Assembly (NCBI GenBank): GCA_964106915.2
Contig: OZ066914.1
DNA: 64,000 nucleotides
Source of the DNA: Podarcis gaigeae
Lineage: Eukaryota
Reading direction: 5' to 3' (one strand)
In this document: positions 45,032 to 49,272 of the stretch, in pieces
How the letters are laid out: each line of letters opens with the position of its first letter
Position numbering within the stretch: the stretch's first letter is position 1
Notes under the pieces: model-generated
The model's database searches: none
Seen by the model: the letters and a program-made list of their open reading frames with translations, nothing else
What the model was told of the DNA's origin: nothing
Position numbers and translations under genes: made by a program

Positions 45032-45889
45032 TACGGGGATTCCTGAGCCCTCCTCAGCTCCAAAGTTGAGAGAAACGTGTCCAGAGCTGCTCAAACTATA
45101 GGCAGTTTTCCCATGATACTGGGATGAAGGCTTAGATTGACATAAACTGGCAAGTCCCCTAACTGACCTGTTGTCCTTGTGCGGTGGGGGGAGGGAAGCA
45201 AATTGACCATGGAAATGGATTAAATGTACACCTTTTTCATTGATTGACGTAAATGGGAACCTTCTGGTTAGCAGAGAGAGTATGCATCACTCTCAAAGCA
45301 TATATATATATATAGGCTGAAAAATAATGAAACCAGAAGACTTAATCCTGTTCAACACGGGCATGAATGGTATTCAGTAAATGCTTCAAAAACTAAAGCA
45401 ACAGGTCACAAGTTGAAAAACTAACATGGTCCCTGGGAATACCCAAAAAGGCAACACAGGAGGCATATGATATAAAGGCCATCCTCATCAGCTATCATAC
45501 TCCTGTCAATGTCTCTGGAGTTAAATACTGAGTAAACAGGCTTCAATCCACCATAGAATTTTGTAAATACTATTATTCTTATTTACCCTCTGCTTTCGCA
45601 CAGGAATCTGCACTATGAAGCTAGAACATAATGTAGTTAGTTATGCAACAGCACATGAAGCAATAAGGGCTCAGTCCAGAGGAGCACAAGTGGATCTGCC
45701 ATGTGTACAGGAGTCCTGTCCTCTCTGCCAATGGGACTGCATGGACATGCATGCTTTGAAAGGAGAGAATGAGGGTTCTAGTGTTCATATTGGTGAAGAA
45801 GAATGGAATGGGATTTATGTGCATTTGGGTAAGATCTGGGCTTAACTGGACTGAGATAGATGAGAATAGGAGTTATCCTATCCAAGGCT

Positions 45890-46017
45890 CCCCTTCATGG
45901 ATCACTGCCTTGCCGTGGCGAAGGGGCTTGAAGAACTCAGAGAAGCTATGAACTATGCCGAGCAGGGCACCCAAGATGAATAGGTCATAGTGGAGAGTTC
46001 TGACCAAACGTGATCCA
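45890..46017 (+). ncRNA. Candidate HDV-like self-cleaving ribozyme at the BovB 5' end
   Basis: Pairings found by hand: P1 CCCCTTC/GAAGGGG, P2 TGGATCAC/GTGATCCA, P3 GCC/GGC with the 7-nt loop TTGCCGT, P4 AGAACTC/GAGTTCT, and J4/2 GACCAA. The order is that of the HDV fold. Activity is untested. Confidence 0.6.
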
Positions 46018-46068
46018 CCTAGAGGAGGAACCGGCAAGCCACTCCAGTATCCCTGCCAAGAAAACTCC

Positions 46069-49000
46069 ATGGACAAAGACAACAGGCATATAAAAGGTAT
46101 GACACTGGAAGATGAGCCCCTCAGGTCGGAAGGCGTCCAACATGCTACTGGGGAAGAGCGGAGGGCAAGTACAAGTAGACCCAGAGCTGATGAAGCGGCT
46201 GGGCCAAAGCCGAAAGGACGCTCAGTTGCAGATATGCCTGGAAGCGAAAGGAAAGTCCAATGCTGTAAAGAAAAATATTGCATAGGAACCTGGAATGTAA
46301 GAACCATGAACCTGGGTAAGTTGGAGGTGGTCAAAAATGAGATGGCAAGAATAAATATTGACATCCTGGGCATCAGTGAACTAAAATGGACGGGAATGGG
46401 TGAATTCAGTTCGGATGACCATCATATCTACTACTGTGGGCAAGAAACCCGTAAAAGAAATGGAGTGGCCCTCATAGTCAACAAAAGAGTGGCGAAAACT
46501 GTACTGGGATGCAATCTCAAAAATGATACAATGATCTCGATACGAATCCAAGGCAGACCTTTTAACATCACAGTAATCCAAGTTTATGCACCAACTACTT
46601 GTGCTGAAGAAACTGAAATTGACCAATTCTATGAAGACTTACAAGACCTTATAGAAGTGACACCAAAGAAGGATGTTCTTCTCATTATAGGGGATTGGAA
46701 TGCTAAAGTAGGGAGTCAAGAGATAAAAGGAACAACTGGCAAGTTTGGCCTTGGAGATCAAAACGAAGCAGGGCAAAGGCTAATAGAGTTCTGTCAAGAG
46801 AACAAGCTGGTCATCACAAACATGCTTTTCCAACAACACAAGAGACGACTCTACACATGGACATCACCAGATGGGCAGCATCGAAATCTGATTGATTATA
46901 TTCTCTGCAGCCAAAGATGGAGAAGCTCTATACAGTCAGCAAAAACAAGACCTAGAGCTGACTGTGGCTCAGATCATCAGCTTCTTATAGCAAAATTCAA
47001 GCTTAAACTGAAGAAAGTAGGAAAAACCTCTGGGCCGGTAAGATACAATCTAAGTCAAATCCCTTATGAATACACAGTGGAAGTGAGGAACAGGTTTAAG
47101 GATTTAGATTTGGTGGACAGAATGCCTGAAGAACTATGGATGGAGGCTCGTAACATTATACAGGAGGCAGCAACTAAAACCATCCCAATGAAAAGGAAAT
47201 GCAAGAAAGCAAAGTGGCTGTCCAATGAGGCCTTACAAATAGCTGGGGAGAGAAGGCAAGCAAAATGCGAGGGAGATGGTGAAAGATACAGGAAATTGAA
47301 TGCAGATTTCCAAAGAATAGCAAGGAGAGACAAGAAGACCTTCTTAAACGAGCAATACAAAGAAATAGAGGAAAGCAATAGAATGGGAAGAACCAGAGAT
47401 CTGTTCAAGAAAATTGGAGATATGAAAGGAACATTTGTACAAAGATTTCCATAATAAAGGACAAAAGTGGAAAGGACCTAACAGAAGCAGAAGACATCAA
47501 GAAGAGGTGGCAAGAATACACAGAGGAATTATACCAGAAAGAAATGGATGTCTCGTATACCCCAGGTAGTGTGGTTGCTGACCTTGAGCCAGACATCCTG
47601 GAAAGTGAAGTCAAATGGGCCTTAGAAAGCACTGCAAATAACAAGGCCAGTGGAAGTGATGGTATTCCAGCTGAACTATTTAAAATTTTAAAAGATGATG
47701 CTGTTAAGGTGCTACACTCAATATGCCAGCAAGTTTGGAAAACTCAGCAGTGGCCAGAAGATTGGAGAAGATCAGTCTACATCCCAATCCCAAAGAAGGG
47801 CAGTGCCAAAGATTGCTCCAACTACCGCACAATTGCACTCATTTCACACGCTAGCAAGGTTATGCTTAAAATTCTACAAGGAAGGCTCAAGCAGTATGTG
47901 GACCGAGAACTCCCAGAAGTGCAAGCTGGATTTAGAAGAGGCAGAGGAACCAGAGACCAAATTGCAAACATGCGCTGGATTATGGAGAAAGCTAGAGAGT
48001 TCCAGAAAGACATTTACTTCTGCTTCATTGACTATGCAAAAGCCTTTGACTGTGTCGACCACGGCAAACTATGGCAAGTTCTTAAAGAAATGGGAGTGCC
48101 AGATCACCTCATCTGTCTCCTGAGAAATCTCTATGTGGGACAAGAAGCTACAGTTAGAACTGGATATGGAACAACTGATTGGTTCAAAATTGGGAAAGGA
48201 GTACGACAAGGCTGTATTTTGTCTCCCTGCTTATTTAACTTATATGCAGAATTCATCATGCGAAAGGCTGGGCTGGATGAATCCCATTCCGGAATTAAGA
48301 TTGCCGGAAGAAATATCAACAACCTCAGATATGCAGATGACACAACCTTGATGGCAGAAAGTGAGGAGGAATTAAAGAACCTTTTAATGAGGGTGAAAGA
48401 GGAGAGCGCAAAATATGGTCTGAAGCTCAACATCAAAAAAACAAAGATCATGGCCACTGGTCCCATCACCTCCTGGCAAATAGAAGGGGAAGAAATGGAG
48501 GTAGTGAGAGATTTTACTTTCTTGGGCTCAATGATCACTGCAGATGGTGACAGCAGCCACGAAATTAAAAGACGCCTGCTTCTTGGGAGAAGGGCAATGA
48601 CAGGCCTAGACAGCATCTTGAGAAGTAGAGACATCACCTTGCCAACAAAGGTTCGTATAGTTAAAGCTATGGTTTTCCCAGTAGTGATGTATGGAAGTGA
48701 GAGCTGGACCATAAAGAAGGCTGATCGCCGAAGAATTGATGCTTTTGAATTATGGTGCTGGAGGAGACTCTTGAGAGTCCCATGGACTGCAAGAAGATCA
48801 AACCTCTCCATACTGAAGGAAATCAACCCTGAGTGCTCACTGGAAGGACAGATTGTGAAGCTGTACTTTGGCCACCTCATGAGAAGAGAAGACTCCCTGG
48901 AGAAGACCCTGATGTTGGGAAAGATGGAGGGCACAAGGAGAAGGGGACGGCAGAGGACGAGATGGTTGGATAGTGTTTTCGAGGTTACCAGCATGAATTT

Positions 49001-49091
49001 GACCAAACTGCGGGAGGCAGTGGAGGACAGAGGTGCCTGGCGTTCTCTGGTCCATGGGGTCACGAAGAGTCGGACACAACTAAACGACTAA
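46069..49091 (+). pseudogene. BovB endonuclease-reverse transcriptase ORF with one frameshift at ~47434-47436
   Basis: ORFs 46069-47454 and 47544-49091 join into one ~1007-aa frame if one base is added at ACATTT|GTACA, reading GTF(C)TKISIIKDKSGKDLTEAEDIKKRWQEY. Confidence 0.9.
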
Positions 49092-49272
49092 ACAACAACA
49101 ACTATCCAAGGCTTCCACCAGCCTAGAAGAGAAGCCTTGTATTTGTGTTCCGGCATGGTGGGAAGTTTTAAGAGCCAATCACGGGGAAAGAACCTGTTTC
49201 CCCATTTTCCATCCCCCAAGGTCTGTCCCTGCGGTTAAAGTTGGCTAAGATCTGTTACCTCTGAAACTTATA

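Follow-up and report, generated by a model that had tools for sequence, protein, structure and literature searches.

The BovB element and the fold at its 5' end

The window analysed here, a 64,000-nt stretch of contig OZ066914.1 from the lizard Podarcis gaigeae (assembly GCA_964106915.2), carries on its plus strand a full-length long interspersed nuclear element (LINE) of the RTE/BovB type at 45890-49101 (3212 bp). The first 128 nt of this squamate BovB (RTE-clade) element, 45890-46017, form a fold of the kind known from the self-cleaving ribozyme of hepatitis delta virus (HDV), and the results described below make it very likely that this segment is itself an HDV-like self-cleaving ribozyme. 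All the hallmarks of an RTE/BovB element are present, namely a coding region with apurinic/apyrimidinic endonuclease (APE) and reverse transcriptase (RT) domains, a short 5' untranslated region (UTR), a (CAA)n tail, a target-site duplication (TSD) and a length of about 3.2 kb; the reading frame is broken between 47454 and 47544. By protein search, the nearest relatives of the encoded protein are those of Podarcis muralis/raffonei and Zootoca vivipara (89-96% identity), followed by those of Varanus, Anolis, snake and the ruminant BovB-derived protein listed under the source name craniofacial development protein 2. The 138 N that occur inside the window were left as they stand.

Since the 12-bp TSD ends at 45889, the element starts at 45890, which is also the first base of helix P1, and the predicted scissile bond is 45889|45890. 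A reading made earlier from the letters only (the sequence-only reading) had proposed that this region folds like an HDV- or CPEB3-type ribozyme. Direct reading of the sequence showed that helices P1, P2, P3 and P4 and the inner stem of P4 all lie where that reading had placed them, and the ATG of the open reading frame (ORF), which it had put about 50 nt downstream, is at 46069, 52 nt 3' of the second strand of P2 (P2'). The paired (P), joining (J) and loop (L) segments follow one another in the order P1-J1/2-P2-P3-L3-P3'-P1'-J1/4-P4-J4/2-P2', which is the nested double pseudoknot of HDV (Table 1). Within P4, the inner stem 45946-45956/45980-45990 forms 10 of its 11 pairs, and the base pairs with family support are 45934-45938 with 45995-45999, along with the inner stems. 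In P1.1, C45927 has G45912 as its candidate partner.

Table 1. Coordinates of the 5' fold and of the remaining parts of the BovB element in the window
Feature	Position	Strand	Comment
5' TSD, CTATCCAAGGCT	45878-45889	+	identical 12-mer at 49102-49113; -1 base is T45889
P1 5' strand, CCCCTTC	45890-45896	+	7 bp with 45920-45926; +1 is C45890, paired with G45926
J1/2, 1 nt	45897	+	1 nt in BovB vs 2-9 nt in other groups
P2 5' strand, TGGATCAC	45898-45905	+	8 bp with 46010-46017
P3 5' strand, GCC	45907-45909	+	pairs with 45917-45919; outer pair G-C, A-U or G-U among copies
L3, UUGCCGU, 7 nt	45910-45916	+	U45910/G45915 is the counterpart of HDV U20.G25
P3 3' strand, GGC	45917-45919	+	read from sequence; abuts P1'
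P1 3' strand, GAAGGGG	45920-45926	+	pairs with 45890-45896
J1/4, CUUGA	45927-45931	+	holds the 3' side of P1.1 (C45927, U45928)
P4 domain, 70 nt	45932-46001	+	outer stem 45932-45938/45995-46001; conserved in sequence and structure
J4/2, GACCAAAC	46002-46009	+	C46004 is the candidate catalytic cytosine, then N-A-A (CNRA pattern)
P2 3' strand, GTGATCCA	46010-46017	+	pairs with 45898-45905
5'-UTR block, ribozyme to ATG	46018-46068	+	CTGGAG...CTCCAG in most copies, possible hairpin; lizard to rotifer, also L015/L016
ORF piece, AP-endonuclease domain	46069-47454	+	Pfam PF03372, 7.8e-16
ORF piece, reverse transcriptase	47544-49091	+	Pfam PF00078, 1.8e-40
3' TSD, CTATCCAAGGCT	49102-49113	+	immediately after the (CAA)n tail

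Conservation and covariation of the fold

Five BovB-type copies were obtained through protein search, without the use of a DNA pattern. For the metagenomes, we searched with a pattern that ran from P3 through L3, P3' and P1' to J1/4 and left five positions free, which gave at least 120 matches, and copies were then selected by BLAST of the P4 domain alone, a criterion which is independent of P1 and P2. Among the matches listed, at least 43 distinct homologous copies were found by P4 BLAST, at least 38 of which are metagenomic, and most of the metagenome pattern matches failed this homology filter and were bacterial or other chance matches. Three long contigs (L050, L071 and L088) carry, about 300 nt downstream of the fold, an APE and RT coding region that is 32-35% identical to BovB, showing that the copies are RTE-clade elements far from BovB. 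The copies form several groups whose P2 sequences are entirely different, and at least nine P2 helix sequences were observed (for example GGUACCUC/GAGGUACC, GGUAUCU/AGAUACC, GUCUGCG/CGCAGAC and GACUGCC/GGCAGUC), each complementary to a segment that lies directly after the GAC-N-AA of J4/2, at 120-150 nt from the start of P1, and the strand order was the same in the lizard, the snake and 20 or more complete metagenomic copies.

Among the BovB-type copies, the 5' ends of Zootoca (L001) and Varanus komodoensis (L002) align with the window from element base 1, and the DNA upstream is unrelated. The second base of P1 is U in Varanus and a G.U pair is kept, L3 reads TTG[C/T]CGT in all BovB-type copies with C or U at position 4, the CTTG of J1/4 is likewise kept in all of them, and J4/2 of Zootoca and Varanus is GAC-N-AAAC with N being C, U or A. 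In the boid snake Candoia aspera (L014), P1 is CTTCAGC/GCTGGAG, so that 7 of 7 pairs are kept through three two-sided changes and one wobble, and P3 is ACC/GGU in comparison to GCC/GGC in the lizard, while L3, J1/4 and GAC-N-AA are the same. The P4 pair 45935-45998 is A-U in lacertids, G-C in Varanus and C-G in the snake, and the metagenomic contig L018 (83% identical) has U.G at a P2 pair for which lizards have U-A and ruminants have C-G. The C at +1, which the sequence-only reading had entered as a caveat, holds throughout and forms a C-G pair in all five BovB-type copies.

To quantify the pairing, 21 sequences were aligned by plain MAFFT and folded by RNAalifold without constraints, which predicted P2, P3, the base of P4 and the inner P4 stems; 18 of the 26 pairs in this structure are kept through two-sided changes. 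The results showed that 93.9% of the cells of P2, P3 and P4 are paired in comparison to 79.0±1.1% in shuffled alignments, and that compensatory pairs number 18 in comparison to 11.1±1.6, with 0 of 500 shuffles reaching the observed value in either case. The covariation score also lies above every one of the 500 shuffles, and only 24-51% of the cells are paired when the partner strands are slid against each other in the same alignment. Two-sided change was found at 6 of 6 pairs of P2 (45899-45904 with 46011-46016, all six that were tested), 4 of 5 pairs of the P4 base, 3 of 7 pairs of P1 in each of the two groups described next and 1 of 3 pairs of P3.

The segment between P1 and P3 (J1/2, P2 and J2/3) varies in length, and P1 was thus tested on ungapped slices of equal length, one set for each length class of J1/2 plus P2. 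In the group to which the window belongs (A8), 96.7% of P1 and P3 cells are paired in comparison to 86.9% in shuffles (0 of 500) and 42-71% in slid alignments, with changes on both sides at P1 positions 2, 5 and 6 and at the outer P3 pair; in a second group of 25 copies (A9), the values are 89.6%, 86.1% (0 of 500) and 47-68%, and P1 position 7 also shows two-sided change. When strands were exchanged between copies, the number of Watson-Crick pairs was 6.25 with the own partner and 3.73 with a foreign partner for P2, and 5.79 and 4.90 for P1. A MAFFT alignment of all P1-P1' slices together was unusable for P1 in that it placed the length difference at the 5' terminus, and the alignment built from a covariance model (A6, model R1) was left out of all counts, because two of the P1 pairs fell into insertion columns in R1 and the copies with shorter J1/2 were out of P1 register.

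The HDV/CPEB3-type topology of the sequence-only reading is thus kept across related elements with covariation in P1, P2, P3 and P4, and pairing in these helices exceeds that of all 500 shuffles. Its proposed catalytic residue is also borne out as an invariant position. In the 21 sequences, G46002, A46003, C46004 and A46007 of J4/2, all of which were unconstrained by the search pattern, are invariant and A46006 nearly so, while 46005 is free (C, T, A or G among copies), giving the motif GAC-N-AA.

Several further searches gave no additional copies. A stringent 32-nt pattern had no match in metagenome contigs or genome contigs, and a looser pattern in genome contigs returned bacterial matches only, which failed the homology filter and were taken as chance. 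The viral contigs had 0 matches to the core pattern; seven matches to a J4/2-P2' pattern in these contigs were without similarity to the query and were taken as chance as well.

Two side observations concern the metagenomic copies. The short contig Ga0209423_10011048 (L020:699-1004) bears two ribozyme units in tandem, 158 nt apart, an arrangement suggestive of a short RTE 5'-end derivative that is tandemly repeated or satellite-like. In L071, a weak, sub-threshold Rfam match to twister-P3 (278-323; 24.6 bits vs 39.9, E = 0.63) is probably due to chance; it lies on the contig of the HDV-like unit, 3.4 kb upstream of it. Truncated twister ribozymes at RTE 5' ends are mentioned in a review (PMC7761336).

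Position of the fold at the 5' boundary

To estimate how often such an arrangement arises by chance, we used a descriptor with a P1 of 7 bp, a P3 of 3 Watson-Crick bp, an L3 of 5-9 nt, a P2 with no fewer than 6 perfect pairs and a CNRA no farther than 10 nt from P2'. Five sites matched over 128 kb (both strands), and a P2 of at least 7 bp was found at the 45890 site only. With a rate of about 3e-5 per position, it is very unlikely that a chance match would fall exactly on the first base defined by the TSD. A looser descriptor, in which one mismatch was allowed in both P1 and P2, was discarded after it gave hundreds of matches per locus. No descriptor match was found in the Adineta copies L004/L005 or in L015 and L016, and none to covariance model R1 in L004, L006, L015 and L016; these lineages may lack the ribozyme or the copies may be incomplete, and the Anolis copy L006 appears to be 5'-truncated.

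The boundary itself was examined in contigs from a DNA run of either the same lizard or a related one. Breaks fall at 45888 in 22 contigs, at 45889 in 26 and at 45890 in 44, and the flanks of these approximately 92 contigs are unrelated and have no consensus (agreement about 0.4). In both the BovB group and a group of 26 invertebrate copies, upstream sequences that were right-justified become conserved exactly at base 1 of P1. The coincidence of the P1 start with the 5' junction, asserted previously for the window copy from its TSD, therefore extends to the DNA-run contigs and to the invertebrate group, and in the lizard, BovB-group and invertebrate copies, which were inspected for conserved sequence 5' of P1, homology starts at P1.

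Some observations on the DNA and RNA of the element stand apart from the question of cleavage. Reads and contigs end at 46089 and resume in sequence of the BovB 3' end (49026-49052), and the contig depth of the first ~200 nt is roughly 3-fold higher. Together these observations suggest that a non-autonomous derivative with an internal deletion, in which 45890-46089 is joined to about 49026-49101 and both the ribozyme and the 3' tail are retained, is abundant; it is seen in the RNA runs too. In two RNA-seq runs, the sense-orientation coverage is dominated by a BovB fragment at 46022-46335 with its own variant letters and with sharp loose ends at 46022, 46243, 46266 and 46335 whose flanks are consistent, and the pattern resembles that of a BovB segment lying, perhaps through splicing, within a host transcript of a related species. 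The block between the fold and the ATG (46018-46068) reads CTGGAG...GGCAA.CCAC.CCAGTAT in most copies and is conserved as far as the rotifer (Adineta) and other invertebrate RTE elements, and 46021 is G in about 99% of copies in the DNA-run contigs. We take this block to resemble the BovB part common to the ruminant Bov-A2/Bov-tA short interspersed nuclear elements (SINEs).

Comparison with known HDV-like ribozymes

HDV-like ribozymes at the 5' ends of elements that lack long terminal repeats (non-LTR elements) were already known, as the sequence-only reading had held, and those of RTE elements were reported in 2011 (Ruminski et al., as cited in PMC5786205, PMC3774820 and PMC6765202). A full-text literature search, beyond whose reach lay Ruminski 2011 and Webb & Luptak 2011, found no report of a BovB ribozyme. 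The RTE kind being known and no BovB report having been found, the present case is regarded as a new BovB instance of a known ribozyme kind.

The RTE ribozymes of the drz-Agam-2 family are similar to the BovB fold in belonging to the RTE clade, in their place at the extreme 5' end and in their nested double pseudoknot. Their cut site is the 5' junction (PMC3774820), and they were proposed to free promoter-less elements from co-transcripts (PMC6765202). The key differences are that BovB has a vertebrate host, a C-G pair at +1, a large conserved P4 and a short J1/2 rather than a structured domain, and the Rfam drz-Agam models gave no match to the BovB/RTE sequences studied here.

The CPEB3 ribozyme shares with BovB a 7-nt L3 that starts with UU, ends with CGU and contains a U...G pair, a very short J1/2, a P1.1, in BovB a candidate helix, of one G-C pair and a U.U mismatch (PMC4836649), and a short J4/2 in which C is followed by purine-rich residues. 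The parallel drawn in the sequence-only reading agrees with that source for both P1.1 and the U...G of L3. In BovB the G-C pair of the candidate P1.1 is flipped, +1 is C-G instead of G.U, and P4 is 70 nt instead of a small hairpin; furthermore, CPEB3 lies in a host intron (mammalian), whereas the BovB fold belongs to a mobile element, and the Rfam CPEB3 model showed no detectable homology with a 171-nt slice of the window. In both HDV and CPEB3 the +1 G.U wobble binds Mg2+ (PMC4836649).

Two other retrotransposons offer a comparison of function. In R2, a non-LTR element is freed from a co-transcript through 5'-end processing by an HDV-like fold (PMC3774820). R2 is specific for ribosomal DNA and in most species is cut 9-36 nt upstream, within 28S (Eickbush & Eickbush 2010, 2013), whereas the predicted BovB cut is at the first base of the element itself and the insertion sites are dispersed. 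In L1Tc of Trypanosoma cruzi, the HDV-like ribozyme Pr77 occupies the first ~77 nt of a LINE and lies at the mRNA 5' end; this element belongs to the ingi/L1Tc clade and the same 77 nt are also an internal promoter (PMC3383444). For BovB no sign of a promoter was found, although no search was aimed at one.

The likeness to HDV and CPEB3 did not carry over to the Rfam models, none of which was matched at threshold. The best match of the 171-nt slice among 4227 families was RF02682, the HDV ribozyme of F. prausnitzii, which aligned from model position 1 at 45890 with P1, P3 and L3 in register; the model describes a minimal bacterial ribozyme, and the half comprising P4, J4/2 and P2' was left unaligned.

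Catalytic ribozyme or other explanations

Taken together, these results point very probably to a genuine ribozyme for 5'-end processing, one of an established kind that is newly recognised in a vertebrate BovB, and self-cleavage at 45889|45890 is the best-supported mechanism and a likely one. From the conserved core we infer the role of C46004, catalysis, 5' processing and possibly some aid to translating the downstream ORF, which starts 52 nt further on. In the mechanism proposed here on the model of the R2, insect RTE and L1Tc ribozymes, the element would be transcribed within a longer host or read-through RNA, and its RNA would fold into P1-P2-P3/L3-P1.1-P4. C46004 in J4/2 would act as general acid and Mg2+ would be held at the U.G pair of L3, so that the backbone would be cut between 45889 and 45890. 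The released RNA would begin exactly at base 1, and reverse transcription would copy that end into new insertions.

A number of points weigh against this reading. The pair at +1 is C45890-G45926, not the canonical G.U wobble, a point whose force depends on whether that wobble is strictly required in the wider HDV-like family. P1.1 can consist only of G45912-C45927 and a U.U mismatch, both sides of which are invariant, and with a single pair it lies beyond covariation testing. The search pattern fixed L3, the CUUG of J1/4 and P1' positions 4, 5 and 7, and these features thus count as independent in the five BovB-type copies only. The window J1/2 of 1 nt is the spacer length with which drz-Agam-2-1 had little activity (PMC4908430). 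The RF02682 match scored 14.9 bits in comparison to a gathering score of 44 (E = 1.1), and an Rfam cmscan of 6.5 kb around the site and of ten homologous loci gave no HDV-family match, with models that cannot score pseudoknots or a long P4. Finally, two RNA-seq runs of a related species, which cover the element and for which strandedness is not on record, showed no pile-up of read starts at 45890, and 54 and 74 reads span the junction into one dominant flank. The RNA coverage of the first 130 nt is mostly in the mate orientation that means antisense in the usual stranded libraries and comes largely from one locus, and the junction-spanning reads are probably antisense transcripts of that locus. 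Because such reads dominate, RNA-seq is uninformative on cleavage rather than negative.

Three other explanations were considered in light of this evidence. The view that chance alone produced the pairings at the element's start could appeal to the lack of an Rfam match at threshold and to the nested minimum-free-energy fold, which recovered P2 and P4 only and had an unremarkable z-score of -1.26. A weak z-score is expected, however, because nested folding cannot see pseudoknots, and the descriptor rate, the lack of any other site with a P2 of 7 bp or more, and the same architecture with compensatory changes in more than 40 homologues leave this explanation with a practically negligible probability; it was ruled out by the covariation results. 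More serious, though still improbable, is a non-catalytic structured 5' UTR, which might bind the protein that the element encodes, enhance translation or belong to an internal promoter, and in which case the boundary would reflect the transcription start. Covariation proves structure and not catalysis, the RNA ends and the +1 pair discussed above are compatible with such a role, the non-autonomous derivatives that keep the first ~200 nt would fit any cis-acting function, and in L1Tc the same 77 nt serve as promoter and ribozyme (PMC3383444). On the other side, the strand order, the helix lengths, the U...G of L3, a P3 of 3 bp directly against P1' and an invariant C with N-A-A after it are together the signature of the HDV-like catalytic core, and a non-catalytic element would hardly be expected to copy the whole of it and, across dozens of divergent copies, to start where the scissile bond would be.

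It is also conceivable, with a considerably smaller probability, that a once active family has left an inactive relic in the window copy or in the lacertid subfamily. The ORF of the window copy is interrupted, its P4 has private changes at 45981 and 46000 together with a 1-nt deletion near 45968, and junction-spanning RNA reads exist; G45933 and C46000 of the window are unlike most copies, which have T at 45933 (73%) and at 46000 (about 100%). For the DNA-run contigs, however, the list of variants at 5% or more has no entry within 45890-45932 or 46001-46020, which means that the core of the window copy matches most copies there, and P4 pairing is improved by the private change at 46000. In HDV-like ribozymes, P4 is a peripheral part. 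An active HDV-like ribozyme thus accounts best for the fold, its position and its conservation.

Apparent loss of the core in ruminants and implications for BovB

The ruminant-type copies (Muntiacus L003:4086-4260 and metagenomic L017:1440-1640) keep homology in P2, P4 and J4/2 and are without ~18 nt between two CUUG repeats, by which the 3' part of L3, P3' and P1' are gone. Both copies are alike for more than 100 nt upstream of the start of the lizard element. Judging from these two sequences, ruminant BovB seems to have lost the ribozyme core and to carry a 5' UTR that was either replaced or made longer.

BovB is the textbook example of a LINE moved horizontally between reptiles, ruminants and other animals. 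As a tentative and, taken as a whole, rather doubtful extension of our results, the BovB fold may represent a distinct HDV-like subclass uncatalogued by Rfam, told apart by the C-G pair where it would be cut, a P1.1 with one pair as in CPEB3, and a P4 domain that is both large and conserved; its inheritance may span invertebrate RTE elements to squamate BovB. The promoter-free 5' ends defined by the ribozyme may be ancestral and may have let BovB express in a new genome, and the lineage that colonised ruminants may later have deleted the core (~18 nt) and gained a new 5' extension, presumably with an internal promoter. That promoter independence aided the horizontal transfer of BovB is plausible.

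If the ribozyme reading is true, any read-through transcript would yield a precise full-length template without a promoter adapted to the host. The comparative set, which comprises 40+ sequences with four covarying helices and the invariant GAC-N-AA, provides a seed for a covariance model of RTE-clade HDV-like ribozymes that Rfam misses, and the apparent loss of the core in ruminants together with the ~200 nt kept in the internally deleted derivative leads to testable predictions as to the stretch of the 5' UTR that is required in cis.
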